Source: Dimorphilus gyrociliatus (lineage: Eukaryota > Animalia > Annelida). Taken from it: a stretch of DNA of 64,000 nt. Position numbers and translations under genes: made by a program. Below are positions 1 through 18,209 of this stretch, one piece after another. Each line of letters starts with the position of its first letter. The first letter of the stretch is position 1. The DNA lies in NCBI GenBank assembly GCA_904063045.1, contig CAJFCJ010000007.1:1394510-1458509 (forward strand), given 5' to 3'. Below the pieces are notes generated by a model. The model did no database searches and had not been told where the DNA came from. It worked only from the letters and a program-made list of their open reading frames with translations.

Positions 1-2226
1 GTTGGAAGCTAAATCAAAAGAAAAGCATACTGAAGGTTAGATCACCTTGAAATTGTAAACTATATTTAAATCCGTGCTAAATCACATGTGTTCCCTTCTT
101 CAGGTCCAAAGAAAGTAAAGCAGCCAAAGCTGTCAAGAGAAATTATAGAGAAACATGAGACCGATAGTGAAGAATCTGATATCGAACAAAGTCAGGATGA
201 GGTTGACATAGATTCTGGTGACTCTTCAAAAGACCAAGAAAATGGTGATGTCAAACGTTCGTATATACAAAATTTACGCAGTATCATTGCTAAATCTTCC
301 ATGTTACTTTAACAGTTCCTGGTAGCAGCGTAGCATTTTCGATTCTTACTGACAAATCATTTGTAAACTTAAAGGATGTTGTTTGTGAGGAAACATTAAA
401 AGCTATAAAGGACATGGGATTCGAAAATATGACAGAAATTCAAGCTAAAACTATTCCACCTCTATTAGAGGGACAGTAAGTTGAATAGGTTTTATAATTT
501 TCTGTTCTATAATAGCATCTCATTTTAGTGACTTGATGGGTGCCGCTAAAACGGGAAGTGGCAAAACGTTGGCATTCTTAATTCCAGCCGTAGAGCTATT
601 GCATAAACTAAAATTTATGCCCAGAAACGGTTGGTTACTTTGGTTTAATTATATTAGTTTTTTATTTTGGTATTTTATAAGGCACTGGCGTTATCATTAT
701 ATCGCCAACTAGAGAATTAGCTATGCAAATTTTTGGAGTTGTGAAGGAATTGATGAATCACCATCCTCATACGTACGGTTTGATAATGGGTGGAACCAAC
801 AGACAAGAGGAAGCGAAAAAGATTGCTAAAGGCGTAAATCTTATAGTCGCCACCCCAGGAAGGTTGTTATTTCTATTTTTTTTAAATATTATTTAGAGTT
901 GAGAATATTTTTTTTTCAGACTTCTGGATCATTTACAAAATACTAATCATTTTATGTATAAAAATTTGCAATGTTTGATTATCGATGAGGCTGATCGTAT
1001 TTTGGATATTGGTTTTGAAGAAGAAATGAAACAAATTGTTAAGTTATTACCCAGTAGGTTATCTAATTCTCTTAGTGAGCAAAATTTGTAATAATACTAA
1101 TCGTTGTAGAAAAAAGACAAACGATGCTGTTTTCTGCTACACAAACGCGTAAAACTGAGGATTTAGCAAGAATTTCTCTAAAGAAAGAACCATTATATAT
1201 TGGCGTTGACGACAGTAAAGAAACGGCTACAGTTGATGGTTTGGAACAGGTTTGTTAATGATACGAATTTGGATATGATTGCTAAGCATAATTGTTTACA
1301 GGGCTACGTTATATGTCCTACTGATAAGCGATTTCTATTGCTCTTTACTTTCCTTAAGAAGAATAAGAAAAAGAAAATTATGGTATTTTTAAGTTCTTGT
1401 ATGAGTGTTAAATTCTACAATGAACTATTGAACTATATTGATTTACCAGTTACTTGCATTCACGTAAGTAGTTATCGCTATTAGAAATCTAAATAAAAAG
1501 TTTTATCTCTCCTTCAGGGAAAACAAAAGCAGACCAAGAGAACTCATACTTTTTTCGAATTTTGCAACGCAAAGGAAGCAATTCTCCTCTGTACAGATGT
1601 TGCAGCCAGAGGATTGGATATCCCTATGGTTGATTGGATAATTCAATTTGACCCACCAGATGATCCTTCAGAATACATTCATCGAGTAGGCAGAACTGCC
1701 AGAGGTGAAGGTGGCAAAGGTCATGCTCTTTTAATTCTCCAACCAGAAGAAGTTGGCTTTCTTCGTTACTTGAAGAAAGCTAAAGTTCCTGTTAGTGAAT
1801 TTGAGTTTTCTTGGGCTAAAGTGTCTAACATTCAACCACAACTAGAAAAACTTATAGAAAAAAATTATTTTCTACACAAAAGCGCACAAGAAGCCTATAA
1901 GAGCTATGTTAGAGCATATGCTTCACACAGTTTGAAAAATATATTTGACATAAATGAGCTGGATCTACAGTTGGTAGCTAAGAGTTTTGGATTTAGTGTT
2001 CCTCCCTACGTTGATTTAAGTAAGTGTAATTTTTTCACTGTTAAAATTGAATAAATTAAAAATATTTTGTTCAGATGTACATGCAAGTAAATCTGCCGGA
2101 AGGGTTCGTAAGCGTGGAGGTGGTGGTGGATTTGGATATAAAAAAGATAAGGAACAAAAAAAAGCAAAGATTTATAAAGCTGTTTCGGGTAAAAGAAACG
2201 TAGGTCGAAAACAATTTTCCCGTTAA
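1..2226 (+). CDS. DDX18: DEAD-box RNA helicase DDX18/Has1/pitchoune, multi-exon, 5' end outside window
   Basis: Spliced translation gives [14 protein letters not shown] (Q motif), [47 protein letters not shown] and [11 protein letters not shown]. Many small GT-AG introns. Last exon 2075-2226 ends ...RKQFSR*. Confidence 0.95.
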
Positions 2227-2394: not shown

Positions 2395-3791
2395 TTACTT
2401 CCACAGTTTCTTGATGGACATATTTTTCTCCGAGTCTTTTTGCATAATCTTAGCTACGGCTAGCTCAAAGTCATCCTGGGTCACGTGTACCCGTCTCTCT
2501 CTAAGGGCATACATTCCAGCTTCAGTACATACACCCTTAACCTCAGCTCCTGATGCTCCCGGCATGAGTTCTGCGATTCTTCGTAAATTTATACCTCGTG
2601 TCAAATTCATTCGTCTTGAATGAATTCGTAGAATATCTAATCTAGCCTGTTCGTTTGGAGCAGGAAACTCGATCTTTCTGTCAATTCTTCCTGGACGAAG
2701 TAAAGCTGAATCTAATATATCAATTCTGTTTGTTGCCATTATAACCTTGATATTTTGTTTTGGTTCAAAACCATCTAACTGATTAAGAAGTTCAAGCATG
2801 GTTCTTTGAACTTCACTATCACCACCGCCTGAACTGCCACTCTCGATTCTCGTGGAGCCTATGGAATCGATTTCGTCCATAAAAATGATTGAGGGCGCAT
2901 GTTCTCTGGCCATTACAAAGAGTTCTCGAACCATCCTCGATCCTTCACCAATAAACTTTTGAACGAGTTCAGAACCCGAAACCCTAATGAATGTACAATC
3001 GGTGTGATGAGCTACAGCTCTGGCCAGCAGGGTTTTACCAGTTCCAGGAGGACCGTAAAGTAAAACACCTTTAGGCTGAGCTATACCCAGAGCTTCAAAT
3101 AACTCTGGATGTTTTACGGGCAATTCAATAACTTCTTTTATTTCTTTTATTTGTTTATCCAAACCACCAACAAGTTCATAAGTAGAGTCAGGAACTTTTT
3201 CCACCATCATTAAGCTTACAAGAGGATCAACTTTGCTTGGTAATACTTTGTGTAAAGTATAAGAGTCGTTGCGGAGGGCTACGCGAGCACCAGCCGTCAA
3301 TGAGGGTATGTTGATTGACTTATCAACATCGACGACAAATTTTCCCTCAGGATGAACCTTTACAAGTACTTTACTTTTATCCATTGGCCTAACAACTTCT
3401 CCTACGTAAGATCCTTGTTCGTGTAAAAGACCTAATTCTTCCCTAAGCAAACGAACTCTAGCGTTTAATTCATTCCTTTGAGCCTCCAATCTTCTAACAT
3501 TGTGTGTTCTATCTGATAGTTCTCTGTTCATCTCATCCATTTTGGAGATATAGTACTTTTTTAGACCGTCTGTGGCCGGAACATCATCAACTTCCATCTA
3601 TGATAAAACGAATTAAGGTTTTGTACGAAACAAAGAAAACCACTCTCTGATGAGAAGCATCAATGTAAATTAAATTATTTCTCTACGGTCAATCGTAATA
3701 TATGACGTAAACATATGTCGTTTTTATATAAAATTCATTAGTATATAATGAAATTAAAGAGAAATATTGTGCTTACCTTATTGCTCGTCAT
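2395..3791 (-). CDS. PSMC5: 26S proteasome AAA-ATPase Rpt6; micro-exon MTSNK (3777-3791) plus one large exon (2395-3597)
   Basis: 400-aa ORF with [25 protein letters not shown] and [10 protein letters not shown], ending SIKKLWK. Upstream ATG ACG AGC AAT AAG|gtaagc donor joins in phase 0 to the tag|ATGGAA acceptor. Confidence 0.96.
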
Positions 3792-3882: not shown

Positions 3883-6800
3883 ATGGCGAACACCAACCCT
3901 TTTAGTGAAGAAGATTTATCGACTCAGGAGGAAGAAGTACAAGAAAACTCATCTCATGAATCTAGTCCAATAAATGAACGAATAAGCTGGGATCATATTG
4001 CACGGAAATTGCTAGAGGAACAATACCTTCTGACTGCTTTAGAGTTACATACAGAATTGATTGAGGCGGGTAGAGAAAATTCAAAGCTGAGAGATTTTTT
4101 CTCAAATCCAGCTAATTTCGAGAGAACAAGACAAACGGACTTTCCTAATACAACGTTACGTGAGTTAGATCGCGAATCTTGATTATCTCTATGTATAATT
4201 AATTGCAGCCAGGACATCAAGTTGTCAGACATTTGATTCTTTGGATTTCGCCCGATACTCGGATGATGGTGAGCGTCAAGAAAGTGATAAAGTAGCCGTC
4301 TTAGAATTTGAGTTAAGAAAAGCCCAGGAAACTATTCGATCGTTAAGAGCAGCCTTGACAAAAACTGCTGAAACAGAAACAGAATTGTTAACATCTCCTG
4401 ACGCTTCAAACAATAAAATCACTGAAGCAGCAATTGAAGATGAGGAGTGCATTAAACCTTACGAAAAACGTGCTATCAATTTTCTTGTTAATGAATATTT
4501 ATTAAGTCACGATTATAAAATAAGTTCTGTTACTTTTTGTGAAGAAAATGAAAATCAAGATTTTGACGATTGGGATGATGTTGGCCTAAATGTTTCGAAG
4601 CCACCAAATTTATTACACTTATATCGTGATTACGGGCATCATGCAATAGAAGTTGTGGAAAAGATTGATAATAGCACTACAGCGGATCTTGATAGCGAGG
4701 AAATTTTGAAAAAAGACGAAATAATTACGCATCTAGTAAGTTACTTTTTCGAATCGATACTGGTTCGACTATATATCAAATTTTTAATAATTATTCCTTT
4801 ATAAAGAATGATAGAATAACTAATTATGAAGAGAGAATAGAAACAATGCAAACAGAAAATGAATTTCTCAGTCACCGATTAAAATCATCTGAAAAGTAAT
4901 TTAATTTTAAATTTATTTGAAATTGAAGGATTACTATTATTTATATAATTCACAGAGATAATCAAATAACTAAATTTTCTGCTACATCAACACCTGCTGT
5001 TAGTCCAATTAAACCGTCCATTAATCAGACCAAAACCGACTCAATAGTAGCAAACGCTGGAAGCGATATACAATTTGAAAATTCTGCAAAAGAAACAATT
5101 GAACAAACACCTGATTCAAGTTATAGTAAAAATGACTCTTGGGAAGCTATCAATCAAACTATACCAGAGTCATTCTCTAAAATATTATTTCAATCAGCTT
5201 TCTACTCACCTCACGACAATCGTATTGTGAATGAAGTTACAGCTGTAAGGGATAATGATGATGTTATCCCTATGCTAGGTCGATGCTTGCCACACATAGT
5301 CCCAAATGTATTACTCAATAAGAGAGAAGTAAATCTTTGTCAATAAATCGCAATAGGATGACTATAATTTATCATTTTCTTTTATAGGAACTTATTCCTG
5401 TTATCTTAGCTGCTGCCAGTCTCCATTCGGATTCTAAAGAAAGAGATAAATTATTAAATATTCTTTTTAATCTTATTAAAAAGCCTGATAGTCAACAAAG
5501 GCAGATCATTCTAACTGGATGTATTGCCTTTGCCAAAAATGTTGCCTATTCAAGATTAGAGAACGAGCTGCTACCACAGTGTTGGGAGCAAGTAAGGCAT
5601 TTTATAAATTCATTAAATATGTAAATAGTTTAAAAACGTCTGTTCATTTGTAGATCGGTCATAAATACTTCGAACGCAGGATGCTAGTTGCCGAAGCATG
5701 TGGAGCGTTGGTTCCGTATTTTTCGGTATGAAATTATAAAACATCGTTTTCCCAACAAGTGCAATCATAAATATTGGAAATCTATTATTTTTTAGAACGA
5801 ATTACGAAGCTCTTTAGTTTTATCGATTTTGCAACAAATGTTAGATGACAAGAGTGACGAAGTAAGAGAAACGAGCGTTCGAAGTTTATCATTACTTTTC
5901 GCTTTCATTCAAGATGAAGGAAAATTTGGACAGGTTTACTTTATGCGCTAACTTTTTAGAATTCCACTGAGAATACAGTTATACTTATTGCACACAGGCT
6001 GGCGAAATGCTTCGAAGAGGTTTACTCGATAAAAGTGAAAATGTTGTTAAAGTTTCAAAAGAGCTGATGCTGCCAACTTACGGCCTCTGGGCTATTTCCC
6101 TCAATAAACTATCCGAAGTTATTCAAACCTATTTTGATTATTTACAAGATGTTATCCGAGTGAGTTGAATCAAAATAGTAATTTATAAATTCTTAATTGA
6201 TTTTAGATAATATTTTCTTTTTTATTCTTTTTATTTACATTCAATTCTACAAAAAACCAAAAAAAAATTTATCTGTACTTTTTTTTTTTGCTTTTTATAT
6301 ATAATTAACTAGAGAGTAGAATATTCTTTAAATAGAACTAAGGTAAGGTAGCGTGCATCTATAAATCAAATTTATAAAAGCTTCTGCTTTAATTTTGAAA
6401 GTTTCAGTAATATAAAGCACGCTTTAGCTGAAATAAAATTACCAACTGTTTTTCCTCCAGTAATATTATATCATTTTACAGACTGCGCTGGCTACCCAAG
6501 TGGCGTCGAATAGTCAAACTCTACCAATCGATACCGGAAAATTTGGTAGATGGATAGATGCTTTGGAAGAATATATACCACTCCTGTTCTCATTAGTTAT
6601 AACTTCCGCTCCCTTCTTAGATAAAATATCTGACGAGCCAGAGAACGACAACGAATATCACCTTCTAGACGATAGATCCACATCTAATTGTCAATTATTG
6701 CAATTAGACACAATTATTGGTAGCAAATCTCGAACAGTTAAGCTATTAGCAAAATATGAAGAGTATATATCAGAAGAGTGGTACGATAGTTGGAAAGAAT

Positions 6801-9800
6801 TTTCATGGGTAGTTGATGATCTGTAAGAAAATAGTAAAATTTCTCGTTTTTCGATTCTAACTATTGACAATTTAACCTTACAGTTTACCGCAATTAATCA
6901 ATGTCGTAAAAACTGTGAGTGATGAGGTGGATTTTGTTGTCGATTCTTTTTGCTCATATTGCCGTACTCTATGCAAAAATTTTGGCTTTACTTTTGTTAA
7001 CACGAAGGTTACCGACATATTAATAGTTTTTTTTTTATTTTTCTATATAAACAATATAAATTTGTTTTTACCCTACAGATATTACCTAAATTTGAAATGA
7101 TGTTTAGTATTCCCAATGATCAAATTGGTTTGTTAGGATAGAATTCAATTAATATAACTTATATTAACATTTAAATATTACAGAATCAATAATATGCAAT
7201 AATCATAGTGTTTATCACAAATGTGCCCTACCTGTATATACTTATTCAATTCTATGCACATTCTTATCAGTTAGTATAAGTTTTAATTAGAAAAATTTTA
7301 ATATATATTTTAATCAATTAATACTTAATGTATTAAAAAAATTCATTAATCTTCTCTAATTCTTTAATCCCATGATTCTTTTTAATAGAAATACGAGAAT
7401 AAGTTATCAAAATTCTTAAGCCGAACCTTAGAAATGGTTGCGGAGAATGGTGCCAATCCTCAATCACTACTTTCAACTTTCGCTCAGTTATCGTTAGTAT
7501 TTTATTTACTACGATGTCAATATTGATAATTTCAATTAATTATTTATAGATTTTTATATACATATTAATATAAAAAAAACTATAGTATTAAATTAATCAA
7601 GTTTATTATGAGAGTTATTACCATAAAATTTATTTAACAATTGTCATTTTATATAGACACGACTCAAACGTACATGATTTGCTTTTAATTGTTCTCTGGG
7701 AAGCCGTTGTTCATTCATCACTTAAAGTTCGCTCATTGTCTGCTAAAGTCTTCGAAGTAAGTCGTTTTTTCAAATTAATTTCTTGATTTAAACAATTTTC
7801 CACCTCAGAATTTAAAATCTAAAAGTTTTCCTTTTTATCCCTTAAGGGTTTATTGAAAAGAATGTCTCCGGCAAATATATCTAATCGTATCATTCCAGCA
7901 CTGGTCACTTTATCCTCGGATCCAGAGATGTATCTATTTCACCCATGAATAATTTTCTTCTTGACTTACACGTAATACATACAAAACATGTTTTCAAAAC
8001 AGGTCTGTAAGGAGAGCTACAATATCACCTTTGACATCCATAATAGAAACTGTATCATCTAGAGAGGTAATGGGTATTAATAAGAAAAGATATTTTTTTC
8101 TCATATGAACTTTATTAAAGGTTTTAGATAAGGTTCGTCTACAACTTCAATCTTTTATGGATGATAATCTTTACGAAGGAGAGCATCTATTACAACTAGA
8201 GCTGATCCATTCACTGGCTCGTGTTGTACCAAACGCTGACGCAAATTTTCGGGATGAGTGTAAGTACTCAATAATTATTGTAAATGTCAACTGACAAGAG
8301 ATAGCGCTGAAAGCTATTCAGGCTTTTTTCATTATAAAGATATTGCGCTAATTAGGAGAGTTCAGTTTCTCGGAAAGGTAGAATAGGATTAGATGTCCTA
8401 AAAATGCTAACTGCACGATTCTGTCTTGTAGATCGGATTAGTATAATATAACGGAGAAATTGCCTCCGGAAATTACTATTTGCGACAAGGTAGATGAAAA
8501 ATTTTCCACTTACGTATATACCCTCAAGTGTTTGGGTTATCGCATCAGCAATTAAAATATTTTTATCTTCATTTTCCGACCATGAAGTAGATTTCAGTCT
8601 TTCCATAACATTCATTAGCATTCGAAATCCCAATCTCGGAGTAACAAATAAAAGAAAAAAGATACATAAAGATAATGCAGTGGTCTCGAGGTTATGCAAT
8701 CCACTCGGTAGAAGTAAATATTTTATCTGGCTATTTAATTTTCTTTTGTTCCTTAAATTTCTACAGCAAACAGTAAGCGAACAGATTGTAACAAAAAAAG
8801 GTAAAATATCTTGTATAAGAATGGCCAAAAGTGGTGAAATGAATTTTTGAAAATATTCACTATGATGATGTCCAGTATTTGTAATAAGACAAACGTAACT
8901 TTTCTCGTTTTTGGTATTCTTAATTAATTGTAGTTCAAATAGCCAAAAGTATTGGGAATTCAATAGAATAAGTATAACTATTAAAAATAATATTACAGTT
9001 CGACATTGCTCCAACTTTAATTTATTTTTGCTTGGACATCTTCCAATAATAGTTGCGTGCACAACGAAACAAATCGCCAACCACTTACTCATATGAAAGG
9101 TTAAATTTAAAATGAACGGATATATTTTACATACAGCAGCATTGCTATTTGTAAGTTTTGTAGAAAGGTCCGAGTGAATGGTATTAGCTAACCATTTATT
9201 ACCAAATTCTAGAATGAGTACAACGCTATCGATTGCAGCTGTAGAAGTAGTAAAAGTTTTTATGTTAGAGAGATAAACAGAATATCTGATAACTATAATT
9301 GAACAGCTATAGAAAAAACATGCTAACTAAATCGTTATTAATACGAACCCAGAAAAACCAAATAAACGTAAGTTGCCGAAACTAAATTGATTAGTTTGAT
9401 GAGTGCCAAAACTCCCAGGAAACAAGTTATGCAGCCTATAAATAATAGACATGGAAAAACGTACTTATATATAAGAAACACAATGCCTTCCTCCTCGGCT
9501 GAATAGTAATTATGATAAAGTCTTAATAAGTCTTCCTCACTCAGAGAGTCTATGGCGTTAGCATCGGGGAAAATTTTACTTAAGTTAAGCATTTCATCTA
9601 ACGCCTTCACGAAAAATGAGCGAATGACAGGAGCGACCTCTCTTTATAGATTTTTCCTCATTTATACTTCGCCAGCTGGAAGGATAGCTCTGTAATGCAT
9701 CGTAATTACGGATGCCTTTTTGTTTACTTAAATCGTGGCCTGAATTTTAGCAATTCCCATGCCACTTATTAACTGTTTATCATTTCAAGGTGATTTATAA

Positions 9801-12311
9801 GGAAGATGTAGAACTAATTAGGCAATTTCCATAGATAATTTTCCATTACAATAGTATTCATACAGTATACTGTATTGTATTATTATATAATTATATACAA
9901 TATAATAAATTTTATATAGTATATCGTATAAATAATAAGTTTCTATAAAGAAATAGATATAGTAGTTATCTAGTACAATTATTATTTTTTCGAAAAATAT
10001 TTCAATTCTACTTCATAATTGATTTTTTCCCAGAATTAGAATTTTTACTTTATATCAATTCGCGATCGGTTAGCTTCTAATTATCATGATGAGATATCAC
10101 ATGTCAATAATACGGATGGCGATGAAGATAATGAAGAACAATTTAATATAGGTTTTTACATTTTTTTTTTCTTTATTCCATTATACTATCTTTTAGATAA
10201 AAAAAAGATTCATGGTAGAAAAGAAAGGAAAGTATATTATGAATAAATACGTAATTTTAATAAAATAGCCAAAAAACTAATAGTATTTATAAAGAGACGA
10301 CATTATTAATAAAAACAAGTTTGGAAAGAAAGTAAAATAATTATATTAGATAAAAATATCACTTGATATTTTGCAATTTGAATGAACTTTGTGAGTTGGA
10401 CATCTTTTAACATCTGTTTCAGAGCTGAAAACTGTTTGCTCTCCTGGTATTTGAGGCCTAGTATTCTTCCATTGACTTATCATTTTTAAGATTGTCGTGA
10501 CGATCGCCATCTGACGGAAAGTTGCTCTAAATACTCCGCTTGTAGTTAGAAGTAATACGAATTTTAACCCAAAAAATACTCCTTCACTTGTCATTGTTAA
10601 GGAATGAAAAAGAACGGCCGAATCATACTCTTGCATATTGTAATGTTCCACATAATACTTGAAGAGCGAATAAGTTACTTTAGGGGTAATTAAAAGAGTA
10701 TAGGCAAGACCAATAGCTATTAAAGAACCTTGAAGTTCGTAGACACCTAATGGTCTAATGCTAAATTTGTAGTCAGCCAACGGTTTGTCCCATTTTGTTA
10801 GCCTTCCGTGCAAAGTGATTATTGTCCCGGCTAAAATGATTAGAAGTGGGATCACATCGCCGACTGTAAAGTCGATTATTGGCCAGATAATATGTGGGAA
10901 GTTACTTAGATGTTGATTTGTGGAATAATTTTGCTTGAAACGGCAAATAAATTGAGTACAAGAGCGATTAACGAACAGTTCAAAGGACCAAAAGTAGTGA
11001 GCATTTAAAAAAATGATAACAACCATAAGTAGGTGGACAATCGCTTTGCAGCCTTCGACTGTATTGGCAATGGGAACCCTTCTCCTGGACCTCAATGCGC
11101 AATCCAAAACTGCAAGTACGAGAGCCCAACGACCCAGATAAAAGAAGAAATTAAATATTAATGGATATATTTTACAAGATAAATCCGTCTTGACAAGAAC
11201 TAAAACGTTAACATCCAAATAAAATGTAGTAGTTACCCATTCGTTGACTATTCGAATAATTATAACACCAATATCCATAAAACACGTTGTTGTAAGATAA
11301 ATGTATGTTGGTGAAACTATATTGTGCAAACTAAACGAAGTTATTAAAAGTAAGAGGTTAGTGAGTATTCCAATAATCGCTATAAATGGTAGTAAATAGG
11401 TATAACACACTGAAGAAATAGTTTGTTCGATTGGTTCGTCGAAAAAATCCTCTAGTTCCGAATCTTCTATGGAGGTATTTATTGATGATAAATCAGGCAG
11501 TGTTGCCCATAGAAAACAGGAATAATCTTTAATACGTAACCCTGGACAAAATCCAGGCAGAGAAAAGCTATCGCCTACCATTTAAACTCCGCTCTATATG
11601 CTTTTTACTCCTCTTTAGTTGTTGTGAAACTACCAGAAACAATTTCAAGTGTTTTAAAGATTAAAATAAATAAAAAAAAACGTGTTGTACAATGGTACAA
11701 CAGGTGTTTTTTTAATTTACAAAGTTAATGAATGATATTTTTATTGCTTTTTAGTTGTACTACCGAGAATGGCAGTAATGGCAGCGACAAATAACCATAA
11801 TGCAGATGAGGCAAAACGATTTGAAATAGCAATGCAATTATTTGAAGCCTATAGCTCGCTATCATGTTGTGGTAATTACAGCCAATAAGATTTATTTTTG
11901 TTTTTTTCTTTATTTTAAGTTTGAAATGAATCCAGGAAAAGTAATTGTGTTTTATACTTACTTATTTTTTACGTTTAGTCATGAACGAACAAGTCGCGGG
12001 AGAATTTTTGCTACCTGGATTAGTTTGCGTTCAGCGTGATATCGCGCAATTAGCTCCAGATCGAGTAGATATTGTTCAGTCCTTGCTCCGCGACGTGCAA
12101 GATCGGTTATCCACGTCTGATCCGTAAGTATATGCATTATTGACATGAAAGCTAGATTCTAATTTATTACTTTTTCCTCCCTCGTGAATTTTCATTCAGG
12201 CGTTTTGCAACATCTACATCCTTTGGTGATATGGGCGTTACATCAAAAATGTTTAACACTTTTAAAGACCTCAAAGATCGTTCAGGATCAAAATTATTTG
12301 GAAAAAAATGA
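3883..12311 (+). CDS. RELCH: RAB11-binding protein RELCH (KIAA1468; LisH, coiled-coil, HEAT repeats), multi-exon
   Basis: N-terminus has LLTALELHTEL, FSNPANFE, DFARYSDDG, EKRAINFLVNEYLL and DFDDWDDVGL. HEAT exons include LPHIVPNVLLNKRE and LLPQCWEQ. The junction NFRDE-F|VLPRM...QLFEAYSSLSCC spans intron 8260-11754. Final exons 11979-12123 (FLLPGL) and 12200-12311 end KLFGKK*. Confidence 0.9.
8352..9592 (-). CDS. Rhodopsin-like (class A) orphan/peptide-receptor-like GPCR, 2 exons, nested in RELCH intron
   Basis: Exon 9349-9592 (TM1, ...ATYVYLVFL) splices over intron 9239-9348 (gttcgt...ctacag) to AAIDSVVL...CKIYPFILN...SKW, continuous with the 246-aa ORF to the stop at 8352. Seven hydrophobic segments. 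Confidence 0.8.
10346..11581 (-). CDS. Rhodopsin-like (class A) orphan/peptide-receptor-like GPCR, intronless, nested in RELCH intron
   Basis: 411-aa ORF with 7 TM segments: GILTNLLL (TM1), SPTYIYL...MD (TM2), CKIYPLIFN (TM3 Cys) and LNAHYFWSFEL. Motifs are shared with the adjacent GPCR. Confidence 0.85.
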   Translation of the reverse strand: MVGDSFSLPGFCPGLRIKDYSCFLWATLPDLSSINTSIEDSELEDFFDEPIEQTISSVCYTYLLPFIAIIGILTNLLLLITSFSLHNIVSPTYIYLTTTCFMDIGVIIIRIVNEWVTTTFYLDVNVLVLVKTDLSCKIYPLIFNFFFYLGRWALVLAVLDCALRSRRRVPIANTVEGCKAIVHLLMVVIIFLNAHYFWSFELFVNRSCTQFICRFKQNYSTNQHLSNFPHIIWPIIDFTVGDVIPLLIILAGTIITLHGRLTKWDKPLADYKFSIRPLGVYELQGSLIAIGLAYTLLITPKVTYSLFKYYVEHYNMQEYDSAVLFHSLTMTSEGVFFGLKFVLLLTTSGVFRATFRQMAIVTTILKMISQWKNTRPQIPGEQTVFSSETDVKRCPTHKVHSNCKISSDIFI

Positions 12312-12409
12312 AACATTCCCATCTCTTTTCAATTTATATGAAAAATGAAAAAATTTATTTATAGGCTTATACTTTTTTAACACTTAGCCATTTTTCAAAC
12401 ATTCCCTTA

Positions 12410-12424
12410 TACATATATATATAT

Positions 12425-12462
<38 letters not shown>

Positions 12463-12620
12463 CGTATATTTATACAATTTTCTTGTGTATACTTTTTATG
12501 TCTCTGTTTTTAAATCATTTGCTCTATTGTCATTCCAGTTTTTTAGGTATAATTGTACAAGACGTACATTATGATACACATATATATATATATATATAAT
12601 TTATATATATATATGTGTAT
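12410..12620. repeat. (TA)n microsatellites / AT-rich low complexity downstream of RELCH
   Basis: Long TA dinucleotide runs at about 12410-12465 and 12575-12620. Confidence 0.85.
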
Positions 12621-13139
12621 ATCTTATTTCTTTTAACAAAATTGACAAAGTCTATCTAGCCTTCCCTTCTTTTGTTTAAATTTTACGTTTGTTTTTACAA
12701 TGAAATGAAGATAATAATCTGTACTTTGTTCAAAGTGATAATAACACCTTTAATATATTAATAATATGAATTTTTAAAACTATAACAAGAGAGAAAATAA
12801 ATCAGAGAATAAACTAAAAAAATAAAAAAGATACAATCTTCCTATGTTCGTAATAAAAAATTCAACATCATTTATTCTACTATTTAGTAGGTAACAGATT
12901 GTTTTTCTTTTATTATTAAAACATGAAAGCGCATTTTTTATCTATTACTTTATCATAATCGATAAGTCAAGGCTGAACAATTTTGCTACATTGTTCTTTT
13001 TGATTAAATGTGAACGATGAGTATTTTTCTTTTTTTTTCATTATAGTACCATCGTTAAAACCAATTTAGCGAATCGTATAATAAATTTCTCTTGGGAGGA
13101 TAGATAGCAATAGTATCGCTTTATAGATCTATATACAGT

Positions 13140-13193: not shown

Positions 13194-13571
13194 TTTATTA
13201 GATGGTTTTAGCAATTATTAACTCTTATTTATTTCTATTGCTGTAGTCTCTTATGAAATTTACTAGAAAGATAATGCCAAAGTTAATTTATCCAATTTGA
13301 TTCTAAATTTTGTTTGACATGACATTTAACACTCTTTCAAGAGTAAATCAAAGAAAAACGTCTGCTATATATCTCTTCGCCAATTGATGTAAAAAATTCA
13401 TTTCTCCAAACGTTAGACTGAAAGATGTTCTCAACATTTGTATGGCAAGTATCAAGTAAAAAAAATGGCGGAATTAAGAAAAATTCAAGGTGTATTACCT
13501 ATAAAACCTTTAAAAATGGTATAAAATCTATTTCAAATTTAAATATTTATTAACGAATATTTAAATGAAAT

Positions 13572-15035
13572 ATGATAATTTTATTTCTGATTTTATTAGA
13601 ATCGTATCATGCAATATCTTATCCCAATGAATTTCATAGTGGTTTTAAAGATACAGAAACATTAACTGCTTTACCGGGCTGCTCTTGTAATGATATAAAT
13701 GTTTCCGTTGAAAATGTTACTTTTATTTGTAATGGCAATCAAGAAAATAGATGCGATACAACATATGGCATTTTGAGAAAAAAGACCAACGTTACTATCA
13801 TTTGTAAACGGTCACAGATGCCAACAGTAAAAACTACAGATGTTGTAATTGAATTAGTATTTGATTCTCTATTCTCAGAAAAGGTCAATAGAAATTTATT
13901 AATTAGACAGTTATCTAACTAATTAACAAAAAATTTCTTTAAAAGGGTAATTTGTACTTGGAAAACTGCCAATCTGACTATATTTACATCTATTTTCACG
14001 AATCCTTACCACATATGAATATGATTGATAAAATGATTTATAAAAATACTCATCATTTACCGTGTAATTTGAAAATTAGACAAGTCAACTATTTACGTTT
14101 AATATTGCCAGTTCCAATGATTTATACTATCGATTCATTCTTTCATGAGAAAAACACTTGCGTTTTTGAAGATAAAAAAGGAACTATAAATAACATTGAG
14201 ACATTTTCAGTCGTATCCGATAATCTCGAAAGAAAACAGTTTATTTGGCTTCAGAATAAAGGCAATATGTTAATTGTTAATTTTGCAGTATTTTAACCCT
14301 TTTCCATTTCTCTATTTTCCCCTTCATTTCACTTTACAATCGCATTTTTATATTCTAAAGGTATCATATTTACGAATGATATAATTATAAGTGAATGTGA
14401 GAAATGTACAATTATCCTACCATCCGACTATCATAACAGCCAAATATTATTATTCTTCAAAAGAACATTTACAAATCTTAAAGGTCGATTATCTTTAGGA
14501 ATCGTTATTGGCTGTTTAGATAATATGAATTGGTTAATTCAAGTTTATAAGGCAAGAATCGAAAATGGAAAAATTCATGATGAATTTAAAGGATTTCAAT
14601 GTCCTAGACCTGAAAAATTCACTATATCTTTAAGAAAAAATGACAAAAAGTAGAAGAGAAATTCACTTTATAAAAAAATTCATAAATATGCAAATTTTAT
14701 TCAGATCTAGGTATAATTTTCTAAAAAGCGTAAGATTTATGACAAAGCCAACAACTATACAACAAATAGTAATGAAAACAAGGAGAATGTTAAAGATTTC
14801 AACAAAATTTTCACTTTCAACAACCTCGATAGTCGATCCATTAATCGTCGAAATATTAAGGAGAAGAGATGAAAGATTAAAACTCAGCTCATCCTCTCAT
14901 AGATGGTTAACAGTGATACTTCCAATAGTAGTCTCTCTTATATGCTTCTTTGTCATTTTCTTCGCAATCTATTCATTTTATCTCGAAGGAAAATGTTTAG
15001 AAATGTTACAAAATAATATTTCTAACGAAGATTAG
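13572..15035 (+). CDS. Uncharacterised type I single-pass membrane protein (signal peptide, Cys-containing ectodomain, Thr/Ser-rich stalk, TM), about 4 exons
   Basis: Hydrophobic start MIILFLILL. Three track ORFs plus an open frame GIIFTND...IGCLDNMNWL...KNDK (about 14360-14650) join via short introns. C-terminal TM is WLTVILPIVVSLICFFVIFFAIYSFYL. One junction seems to need a GC donor. Confidence 0.5.
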
Positions 15036-15491: not shown

Positions 15492-18209
15492 TTATGCTTC
15501 TGTTGAATATCGAGAGCGAACAGTTTCAAGAGCATCGTCTACTTCGTTATTACGAATACTAATTCGTCTAACTTTTGTTTCGTACCTTAAAACTGCACCA
15601 CTTTCAGTTGGTACACCAATAACTGGGTTATCCCTGTGAGAATCAGCGGCGTCCTTTCCATTCAAAGCTTGGACAGCTGATTCGTTATAGATTTGACTTT
15701 GAGGTTTAACGGCATCAACCCGAGCGTCATAAGTATCGTCGTATACGCTTGGAGTTGAGTTATTAGCTGTTAAGCTAAATACGGAAAAAAACGGAATGAA
15801 GAGAGTGATTTATAGAAAAAAAGAACATAATAATAATAATAGTGCTATTCGTGTTTACCGAGCTGTATCATCTTTAGGAGCGAATTTCCACGGTTCATTA
15901 AATTTGAACTTTTCCCGAAATCCGGCATTTTGCACATAACATATCAATAAGATAAGGAAAAAGATACCCAGAATCAAGAGGACAAATATGACTATAAGAC
16001 CTATGGAATGAGACGATATGATAATAAAGTAAATGAAAGAGAAATGGCAAACCTGCGTGAAATCTTGTAAAATTTAAAGAACTCTTCTTCTTAGAAAATC
16101 CTACTTGAGGATCAGTCGGTGGATCCTAAGATAATGATTACAAGAATAAATCAACTTTAAAAAGATTAAAAAACAATCCGAAAAATCTTACTGGAGGTTG
16201 AGTTGTTGGTCGATCTGTCTCTGGTGGAGGATTTGTAGGATAGGTTCTAGAAGGGTCTCTGGTAGTTGTTGTTTTGGTTGTTCGTCTCGTTGATCGTTTA
16301 GTCGATGGCTTTGTAGGAGTGGTTGTAGGCTTTTCAGTTGTCTTTGTAGTCGGTTTTGGTGTTGGTGTAGACGTTGGTTCATTTGTCGTCGTAACATAAT
16401 CTGAACAAGAAAGAAAGTAAGTAGGGAGAACGAGGAAGGTAATGATACTACTACAATTTATCATTCTTGAACAACATCATAGTTTATTACATAATAATAA
16501 AAAAGTGATAATAGATAATGAACAGTGATTCAACAACATTACAAATTACCAGAAATAGTAGTATTTAAAAAGTAAGTTGTTGTTAACTCAGTAAAATTGA
16601 AAGTAGTATTTGCGGTCACATTTGGAGCAGTAGACGCTAAATGATTATTAATAAGTAAAATTGTAAAAAAAGATTAAAGTTTGGAATAAGAGATTGATTA
16701 ATTAATTAATTATTTATTTACTTACTAGTTGTTAAGTTAGTAACTTTTTATAGAAAGCATTAAAAGAGATTAAATAAAACAAACGTTTAGCTTTATTTTA
16801 AAGCGAATATTAATAACATACCCGTTGCGCATATTACTCCATAATTTTCAGAACATTTTTCTGTAGTCCATTCACCAGTTTCTAGATTAATGGCAACACA
16901 TGCCTTATCTACTTTGTTCAGATTTTCAGTAGGTTGGCAAACTGACCAATTTGAATAGGTCAAATATCTATCGATTCCATTAATTTTCCAAGATTGTCTG
17001 GTTGCTCCAACCCAGAATTCTTCGTTTCCAGAAAGACCATATGAATCAAGATATGCTGTAGTATTTTCAATAGCTTCTGTCGAATTCAAGTGAATCAAGT
17101 TCATATCTCTCTTCAAACATTCATTTTGGGCCTCACACCAGCTTAATTTCGTACTCGAATATATAAATGTATCAAGACCGTTTTGACATAAAACCCCTTT
17201 TAAACTAGTACAATCATCATCAGACATCTCTAATTTATCATTTTTTGTCGTAAAAGCGCAGGCGCTTCCCGAATCTATTGATCCATCTGGCTGATTTTTC
17301 TTCCATTTTGAAAGAGCTCCGTCAACGTAGAACACAATATTTGCACCAGCTCCTCCACAATTACCTTTTTTACTTGTTACACATTCGATTGTGCAATAGT
17401 ATGAAGATGTGGCCCCGTACCGGCCGTATTTATCGCTACAAAAGCAGATATTTCCTCCACCATCATTCTGAATTCCAGCAACTTTATTCCCTTTTAGTCT
17501 GCATATATTCCCGCATGTAGTGGGATCTATTTGAGTAGGAAGTATTTGTTCGTATTTCGAATCAAGATCAGGCATTATAGAATTATCTTGAAAGCATCCT
17601 TGCTCATACAAAATGGTATGGTCTATATATTTAAAAAACAGAAAAAGTTGATAACAGTTCTGTTTAGCAGAGAGTTATTAAATTTGTTTACCTAAAGACC
17701 AAGACCAATAATTAGGTCGGCTAAAACTGTCACCAACATTTTGGTCCTCTATTGCTTGATACCCAAGCCAAATCTTATTAGAACTACTTTTATTGATATC
17801 TTTTAATTTATTTATTAAATTCTGTTGGGGATTTAAACACAAAATTTTATCAGTTTTGTGTCACACATTCGCATTATGATGGGATCTATTAAAAATAAAC
17901 ATACCGCTTGATAATGAATAAGAAAAGCATCGTTTCCAATCTGACTTTTACATTGGCTTAAACCGTCATTATAATTTGTACTTCCGACGTATTTCAAGCA
18001 CCAATTGTCGTAATTTTCACAACCATCTATTTGATATTTAATATATACTTATTTAAAAATTCAATAAACATAATCTAAATCCTTTCTTGGTTTAGAAATA
18101 GCTTAAATATTAAAGGAACGTGCTTAAAACTCTACTTACGACTTGTGATGAACTTAAGTATAACCAGATAAAGTGTTAATCTTATCCGAAAAATTAAAGC
18201 TGTTGACAT
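15492..18209 (-). CDS. Type I membrane receptor: signal peptide, C-type lectin interrupted by WSC domain, second C-type lectin, mucin stalk, TM, Tyr-containing tail (about 9 exons)
   Basis: Exons 18140-18209 (MSTALIF...), 17905-18026 (WCLKY...C), 17692-17821 (IWLGYQ...WSWSL) and 17622 onward (WSC GCFQD...C..IC...CFC...CGG; WKKNQPD; CTLD FWVGA...NW...C...W...C). These are followed by Thr/Pro-rich exons, TM GLIVIFVLLILGIFFLILLICYV and a last exon ending STEA*. Splice phases are consistent. Confidence 0.8.

Follow-up and report, generated by a model that had tools for sequence, protein, structure and literature searches.

In Drosophila, nearly 10% of the genes are found in nested structures (PMC3814207). 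In insects, the last intron of CG18675 contains TipE, Teh2, Teh3 and Teh4, and a group of GMC oxidoreductase genes lies in an intron of Flo-2 (PMC3240667). In humans, MED12L hosts P2RY12 and P2RY13, which are classed as different-strand nested structures (PMC3933685). Here, a comparable locus is described in a window of 64,000 nucleotides (nt) sampled from contig C7 (CAJFCJ010000007.1, positions 1394510-1458509) of the annelid Dimorphilus gyrociliatus. The window has a GC content of approximately 33%, and the assembly comprises 77.9 Mb in 349 contigs. Near the 3' end of the gene RELCH, an intron (window positions 8260-11754) would house two independent minus-strand genes for class A G protein-coupled receptors (GPCRs), called GPCR1 and GPCR2 in this work. 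The probability of this reading is estimated at about 0.78. All positions are those of the window, and the features are collected in Table 1.

According to this reading, the RELCH pre-mRNA would be spliced across both receptor genes, while each receptor would have a promoter of its own and be read antisense to RELCH. The promoter of GPCR1 would be in the spacer between the two receptor genes, and that of GPCR2 in the 173 nt adjoining the RELCH acceptor and beyond.

Host gene RELCH and its predicted long intron

Judging by its sequence matches, the plus-strand gene whose ATG is at 3883 can be identified as RELCH. In a word search, exon 4241-4735 matched 'RAB11-binding protein RELCH-like' from Tubulanus polymorphus (60% identity, E = 8e-43), KIAA1468-like proteins from Tropilaelaps and Lates, and a RELCH-like protein from Anneissia, and several matches of this exon were named 'lisH domain and HEAT repeat-containing protein KIAA1468'. 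The closest named cluster to the same exon in the Atlas was 'RELCH homolog', with a score of 0.89 and 192 features in common. The architecture of RELCH consists of a LisH domain, a coiled coil and two HEAT-repeat regions (PMC5940305). The RELCH and GPCR1 searches were done one exon at a time. In Pfam, HEAT (PF02985) was found on exon 5796-5948 with E = 1.2e-4 and 22.4 bits, below the cut-off of 23.5, and LisH_2 on exon 4241-4771 with a sub-threshold E of 0.13. Nothing relevant was matched when the RELCH exons were compared with the PDB.

Concerning the splice junction, the exon that ends at 8259 (...GAT GAG T) has no stop codon at its end and is followed by the donor GTAAGT. At the other side, the T-rich AG acceptor (TTGCTTTTTAG; TTATTGCTTTTTAG) precedes the TT GTA CTA CCG of the exon that starts at 11755, 19 nt after the opening of the downstream frame. 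Both sites are in phase 1, the joined codon T+TT encodes F, and the resulting peptide FRDE-F-VLP goes on as ...FRDE-F-VLPRM.... The pattern F..E-(F)-V/L-L-P resembles the start of a HEAT-like helix, and it carries on into the downstream exons. Considering the consensus sites, the phase, the frame opening, the helix pattern and the absent stop codon, splicing from 8259 to 11755 is considered probable. Both receptor coding sequences (8352-9592 and 10346-11581) lie wholly between the donor at 8260 and the acceptor at 11754, and their nesting is conditional on this junction.

The remaining introns of RELCH measure approximately 55-575 nt in the approximate gene model, and the median intron of D. 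gyrociliatus is 66 bp (PMC7854359). With its 3495 nt, the predicted intron is an outlier, approximately 50 times as long as the genome median. Rfam and tandem-repeat scans of 8260-11754 gave no family and no repeat that could otherwise account for this length. The two receptor genes inside, which occupy 68% of the 3.5 kb, explain the length of the intron.

An earlier note on this DNA had already named RELCH as the host gene, a claim borne out by the matches of exon 4241-4735 and by the Atlas cluster. It had also joined 8259 to 11755 to give FRDEFVLP, and both sites, the phase and the length of 3495 nt were confirmed on the sequence. Its statement that this intron is far longer than the others of RELCH holds with the sizes given above, and it correctly placed the GPCR1 stop at 92 nt from the RELCH donor and the GPCR2 ATG at 173 nt from the acceptor.

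Downstream of RELCH, no canonical AATAAA or ATTAAA was found on the plus strand within the 490 nt past the stop codon (12312-12800). Only variant signals are present in this region (AATGAA at 12344 and TATAAA at 12427), together with two TA/AT microsatellites (12408-12474 and 12580-12627), so the 3' end of RELCH is undefined.

Two divergent receptor genes on the opposite strand

GPCR2 is a single-exon gene, and an in-frame stop is located one codon upstream of its ATG. GPCR1 has two exons, with a coding total of 1131 nt and a product of 376 amino acids (aa). Removal of the short intron between them restores the collinearity with GPCR2 (TYVYLVFL-AAIDSVV versus TYIYLTTTCFMDIGV), and the open reading frame (ORF) of the ortholog P0197 opens at this very position (..T/AVIDS). 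In BLASTP, GPCR2 and exon 2 of GPCR1 aligned across 305 aa with 23% identity (E = 3e-26), and exon 1 is collinear with residues 29-97 of GPCR2 (31% identity, E = 5e-4). Furthermore, the motifs CKIYP.I.N and LN..YFW.FEL are found in both receptors. Regarding these alignments, the similarity goes far beyond chance, and GPCR1 and GPCR2 can be taken as paralogs.

A search of 1.84 billion proteins with a profile built from five sequences (A1) gave 1168 representative relatives at E<=1e-3. Among the 94 aligned relatives, 60 matched PF00001 (7tm_1) and 37 matched Srw (PF10324), and the close relatives P0008, P0009 and P0011 (E from 1e-48 to 1e-54) were above the 7tm_1 gathering score. With the profile of 94 sequences (A2), the best match in the PDB was NTSR1 (E = 5e-34), followed by the TRHR, ghrelin, opioid and kisspeptin receptors; the A1 profile gave only a marginal match, the urotensin-2 receptor, with E = 0.13. 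The AlphaFold model of GPCR2 made with the 94-sequence alignment reached a predicted local distance difference test (pLDDT) of 85 and a predicted template modelling score (pTM) of 0.82, whereas the model made with five sequences was unusable (pLDDT of 39). The 94-sequence model presents seven transmembrane helices (7TM), helix 8 and a hairpin in the second extracellular loop (ECL2). The top 50 Foldseek matches of this model were all class A GPCRs for peptides or chemoattractants, with a probability of 1.0 and template modelling scores up to 0.77; NTSR1, orexin and opioid receptors were the best. The fold model is that of GPCR2, and the fold of GPCR1 is read from its alignment to GPCR2. From the profiles and the model, the products of both genes are thus predicted to be orphan GPCRs of the rhodopsin family (class A), divergent and peptide-receptor-like, and by the profile searches they fall within an extensive animal clade of mostly unnamed members that match 7tm_1 and Srw.

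The core residues of the fold are recognizable in GPCR2: N75 (N1.50), D103 (D2.50), C136 (C3.25), C213 in ECL2, P245 (P5.50) and P300 (P6.50). GPCR1 keeps D2.50, C3.25 and the ECL2 cysteine, P5.50 and P6.50, with a Cys at the N1.50 position, and the F-R of helix 8 is retained in both receptors.

At residues 7-29 of GPCR2 (approximately 11563-11495, minus strand), the N-terminal motif PGFCPGLRIKDYSCF(L/I)WA was observed. It is invariant between the clades of GPCR2 and of DgyrCDS5683 (L002/L005), an annotated paralog discussed below, despite an overall identity of 47%, and GPCR1 does not carry it. In DgyrCDS5683 the motif sits on a separate upstream exon, and in GPCR2 the AlphaFold confidence is low in this part. 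The 753-nt spacer was searched for an upstream GPCR1 exon with the PGFCPG motif, and neither a further coding exon nor the motif was found there.

Orthologs of both receptors with intact ORFs were found in the Logan assemblies of two related species. Those of GPCR2 (P0001 and P0002) have 75% identity, and those of GPCR1 have 69-71% (P0005/P0197) and 63% (P0196). An ortholog of a RELCH exon (P0163) was also found, with 83% identity. P0002, P0196 and P0163 share one longest-contig size of 48,633 nt, and P0001 and P0197 share one of 4,691 nt, which suggests that the pair and its linkage to RELCH are conserved in the two species.

In the genome of D. gyrociliatus itself, a profile search returned approximately six or seven members of this receptor family. 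One of them (L002, on contig C7) corresponds to DgyrCDS5683, with 100% identity over approximately 380 aa. DgyrCDS5683 has 47% identity to GPCR2 and lies on the same contig, 1.03 Mb apart, as a stand-alone two-exon gene flanked by one transporter-like and one ribosomal-protein-like gene; it is not nested. More distant members of the clade (E from 5e-42 to 1e-4) were observed as L004 (C4:179505-180476), which is almost identical in sequence to P0030, a database protein, and as L006 (C10:777857), L007 (C12:306389) and L008 (C1:305438).

The phylogenetic tree placed GPCR1 and its orthologs as sister to a group formed by GPCR2 with its orthologs and DgyrCDS5683 with P0004. In the Shimodaira-Hasegawa-like approximate likelihood ratio test (SH-aLRT), the trio received values of 88-89, and the group of GPCR2 with DgyrCDS5683 one of 100; this topology comes from two trees with different sampling, one of them built by a quick method. 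By these comparisons, the nearest paralog of GPCR2 is DgyrCDS5683 and not GPCR1. The duplication is old because both copies, only 23% identical to each other, have orthologs in other species, and, by the sequences, all three lineages already existed before D. gyrociliatus and at least two related species diverged.

These results also bear on what the earlier note had said about the receptors. The 7TM nature of both genes agrees with the profile searches, the GPCR2 model and Foldseek, and their paralogy, proposed from the two common motifs, is borne out by the BLASTP alignment as well as by the motifs themselves. Its description of two complete minus-strand 7TM genes was right in the spans, the strand and the intact frames, but GPCR1 is not a single ORF and its 110-nt intron had been missed. 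Its further proposal of a tandem receptor duplication inside a housekeeping gene stands in that two paralogs lie within the predicted RELCH intron, but it is overstated, as the pair is ancient and the nearest paralog of GPCR2 is 1.03 Mb away.

Concerning the transcript ends, no canonical poly(A) signal is present in the 92 nt between the GPCR1 stop and the RELCH exon. The first canonical one on the minus strand (AATAAA, 8116-8111) lies beyond this exon, and for this reason an antisense overlap of the GPCR1 untranslated region (UTR) with RELCH, of the kind that the earlier note had proposed, is plausible. If this signal is used, the 3' UTR of GPCR1 would run antisense through one entire RELCH exon. 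At the other end of the intron, the GPCR2 promoter probably reaches into RELCH exons.

Alternative readings and annotation of the pair

Several observations weigh against two functional receptor genes nested in RELCH. The 8259/11755 junction and the transcription of both receptors are predictions from the sequence. Moreover, the three downstream plus-strand exons (11755-12311) matched no family: Pfam gave none for the segments 11757-11870, 11981-12124 and 12201-12308, nor for 8130-8258 before the intron, and the Atlas gave no usable match for 11981-12124. All this would also fit a RELCH gene that ends at or just after 8259 (reading through as ECKYSIIIVNVN to a stop), followed by a separate small gene from the ATG at 11770, in frame and 15 nt into the 11755 exon. 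This gene and GPCR2 would be transcribed in divergent directions from a common promoter of approximately 190 nt, and the receptors would be intergenic. However, the exon ending at 8259 has a perfect GTAAGT donor and no stop codon, and position 11755 comes right after a strong polypyrimidine-AG acceptor whose phase matches, which is typical of an internal exon and not of a first one. The HEAT-like helical pattern continues in the downstream peptides, and the first canonical plus-strand poly(A) signals appear only at 8551 or 8647, within the region antisense to GPCR1. An intergenic position of the receptors is considered unlikely.

The receptor sequences themselves also raise doubts. A direct Pfam hmmscan of GPCR1 and GPCR2 gave no match at E<=1, R3.50 is absent, with D-C-A (GPCR2) and H-A-T (GPCR1) at the DRY position, and NPxxY is replaced by K-F-V-L-L and K-F-F-I-Y, respectively. 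GPCR1 additionally lacks N1.50. Neither sequence is found in the public protein collection, unlike DgyrCDS5683. In view of these points, one or both ORFs could be decaying or silent relics, that is, unexpressed pseudogenes kept by chance in a tolerant intron. Nevertheless, such relics would hardly be expected to have intact frames of 411 aa and 376 aa, a conserved GPCR1 intron position, invariant structural core residues and, in two other species, orthologs with unbroken frames and 63-75% identity. The motif losses are also present in the annotated paralog DgyrCDS5683 (D-G-A), and for this reason they can be regarded as old family traits and not as recent decay; in the wider clade, R3.50 is found in 36 of the 94 relatives, P7.50 has changed to F in 71 of the 94, and (K/N)-F-x-x-Y is typical. 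Decay is therefore very improbable. Two further points weigh against the history proposed for the pair: the synteny in the related species is deduced only from equal contig sizes (48,633 and 4,691 nt), and GPCR1 is joined to the GPCR2 clade by long branches, as the tree warning indicated. With all these points considered, two independent receptor genes within the RELCH intron remain the preferred reading.

The missing R3.50 and NPxxY in both receptors, and the missing N1.50 in GPCR1, make canonical G-protein coupling doubtful. If these receptors still signal, their coupling is probably atypical, and a chemoreceptor-like role can be put forward as a guess.

The exact GPCR2 sequence and the long ORF of GPCR1 are absent from a collection of 15 billion proteins. 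Word searches with both receptors, which cover proteins of 0.55-1.75 times the query length, gave no match of at least 90% identity, though DgyrCDS5683 from the same contig is present. The public annotation of D. gyrociliatus therefore appears to lack both nested receptors. In the genome paper, GPCRs were collected by PF00001 at E<0.01 (PMC7854359), and this screen would in any case miss the two receptors.

A more far-reaching proposal is that the pair hosted by RELCH is an antisense unit conserved across dinophilids, in which an overlap of the receptor UTRs or promoter with the adjoining RELCH exons would make the expression of the receptors and of RELCH mutually exclusive in each cell through transcriptional interference. 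The pair would then belong to a Pfam-invisible class A group without the DRY arginine, missing from the published annotation and GPCR count. This combined proposal is speculative and is regarded as a long shot, but if it were true, the 'conserved GPCR repertoire' of the miniature D. gyrociliatus genome would be an undercount.

Features of the window and comparison with known systems

Table 1. Position of RELCH, the two receptor genes and the elements between them in the window (residue numbers for the GPCR2 model).
Feature	Position	Strand	Remarks
RELCH (RAB11-binding protein, KIAA1468 homolog), 5' and central exons	3883..8259	+	ATG at 3883; approximately 14 exons; internal boundaries approximate
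First canonical AATAAA after the GPCR1 stop	8116-8111	-	235 nt downstream; beyond the RELCH exon at approximately 8128-8259; use putative
RELCH intron (predicted), 3495 nt	8260..11754	+	GTAAGT...TTTAG, phase 1; both receptor genes inside
GPCR1 exon 2, 887 nt	8352..9238	-	Transmembrane helices 2-7 and helix 8; stop TAA 8354..8352
GPCR1 intron, 110 nt	9239..9348	-	GT..AG, phase 1; placed by collinearity with GPCR2
GPCR1 exon 1, 244 nt	9349..9592	-	N-terminus and transmembrane helix 1; ATG 9592..9590
AT-rich spacer, 753 nt	9593..10345	-	GPCR2 poly(A) signals; putative GPCR1 promoter
GPCR2 poly(A) signal ATTAAA	10261..10256	-	In the spacer, 84 nt past the stop
GPCR2 poly(A) signal AATAAA	10177..10172	-	In the spacer, 168 nt past the stop
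GPCR2, single-exon divergent class A GPCR (predicted), 411 aa	10346..11581	-	One ORF, ATG to TAA
Gap from the GPCR2 ATG to the RELCH acceptor, 173 nt	11582..11754	-	Must hold the GPCR2 5' UTR; role putative
RELCH exon (predicted)	11755..11871	+	VLPRMAVMAATNNHNADEAKRFEIAMQLFEAYSSLSCC; phase and acceptor
RELCH exon (predicted)	11979..12123	+	...VAGEFLLPGLVCVQRDIAQLAPDRVDIVQSLLRDVQDRLSTSD; HEAT-like helix pattern
Last RELCH exon (predicted)	12200..12311	+	Closes the frame at TGA 12309-12311
Helices of the GPCR2 model	51-85, 93-120, 133-166, 175-192, 223-262, 277-314, 319-347; helix 8 349-374		AlphaFold; residue numbers

Other genes were observed around RELCH. At 2395-3597, on the minus strand, a single-exon gene encodes a 26S proteasome regulatory AAA-ATPase of 400 aa (AAA with E = 5e-44, Prot_ATP_ID_OB_C and AAA_lid_3). 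It is located head to head with RELCH, its start being 285 nt from the RELCH ATG at 3883, and a bidirectional promoter is probably present between both genes. At 88-2230, on the plus strand, lie exons of a gene for a DEAD-box rRNA helicase (with DEAD, Helicase_C and an SPB4-like C-terminal extension, the last with E = 9e-21), and its 3' end is near the converging 3' end of the proteasome ATPase gene. The next genes downstream of RELCH appear at 13569-15032 on the plus strand, as a run of open segments of 117-133 aa, and on the minus strand, where a Thr/Pro-rich, mucin-like segment and a lectin-like segment are present at 15495-16999.

The gene layout of the RELCH locus is ordinary and no new mechanism is revealed, as antisense clusters of paralogs in introns are well documented in flies and vertebrates. 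Its chief value lies in annotation, with two intact, conserved receptor genes apparently lacking from the protein set, and the case also shows the reason for one 3.5-kb intron where the genome median is 66 bp.

Compared with class A peptide-receptor-like GPCRs such as the NTSR1, TRHR, ghrelin, orexin and opioid receptors, the predicted pair has in common the 7TM with helix 8, the ECL2 beta-hairpin, D2.50, the C3.25-ECL2 pair, P5.50 and P6.50, as well as N1.50 in GPCR2 only. The differences from the solved class A receptors are the absence of a Pfam match, DCA/HAT instead of DRY, KFVLL/KFFIY instead of NPxxY, the lack of W6.48 and an identity of only 12-16%. Within the same contig, DgyrCDS5683 is like GPCR2 in its 47% identity and its N-terminal PGFCPGLRIKDYSCF motif, and differs from it in having two exons and standing alone.

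Regarding the arrangement, the TipE/Teh and GMC clusters of insects are also groups of paralogs in a single 3'-proximal intron of an unrelated, conserved single-copy host, and they are stable across species. Unlike the genes in RELCH, they are not GPCRs, and their synteny was mapped, whereas that of the RELCH pair is deduced from contig sizes. In the human MED12L/P2RY12/P2RY13 case, as in RELCH, a broadly expressed host carries in one intron several class A GPCR genes that are related to each other, have few or no introns and are read from the other strand. The two cases differ in host gene, receptor subfamily and phylum. What distinguishes the RELCH locus from MED12L is its compactness: an intron of 3.5 kb in a 78-Mb genome, filled to 68% by genes whose distances to the neighbouring host exons are 92 and 173 nt.

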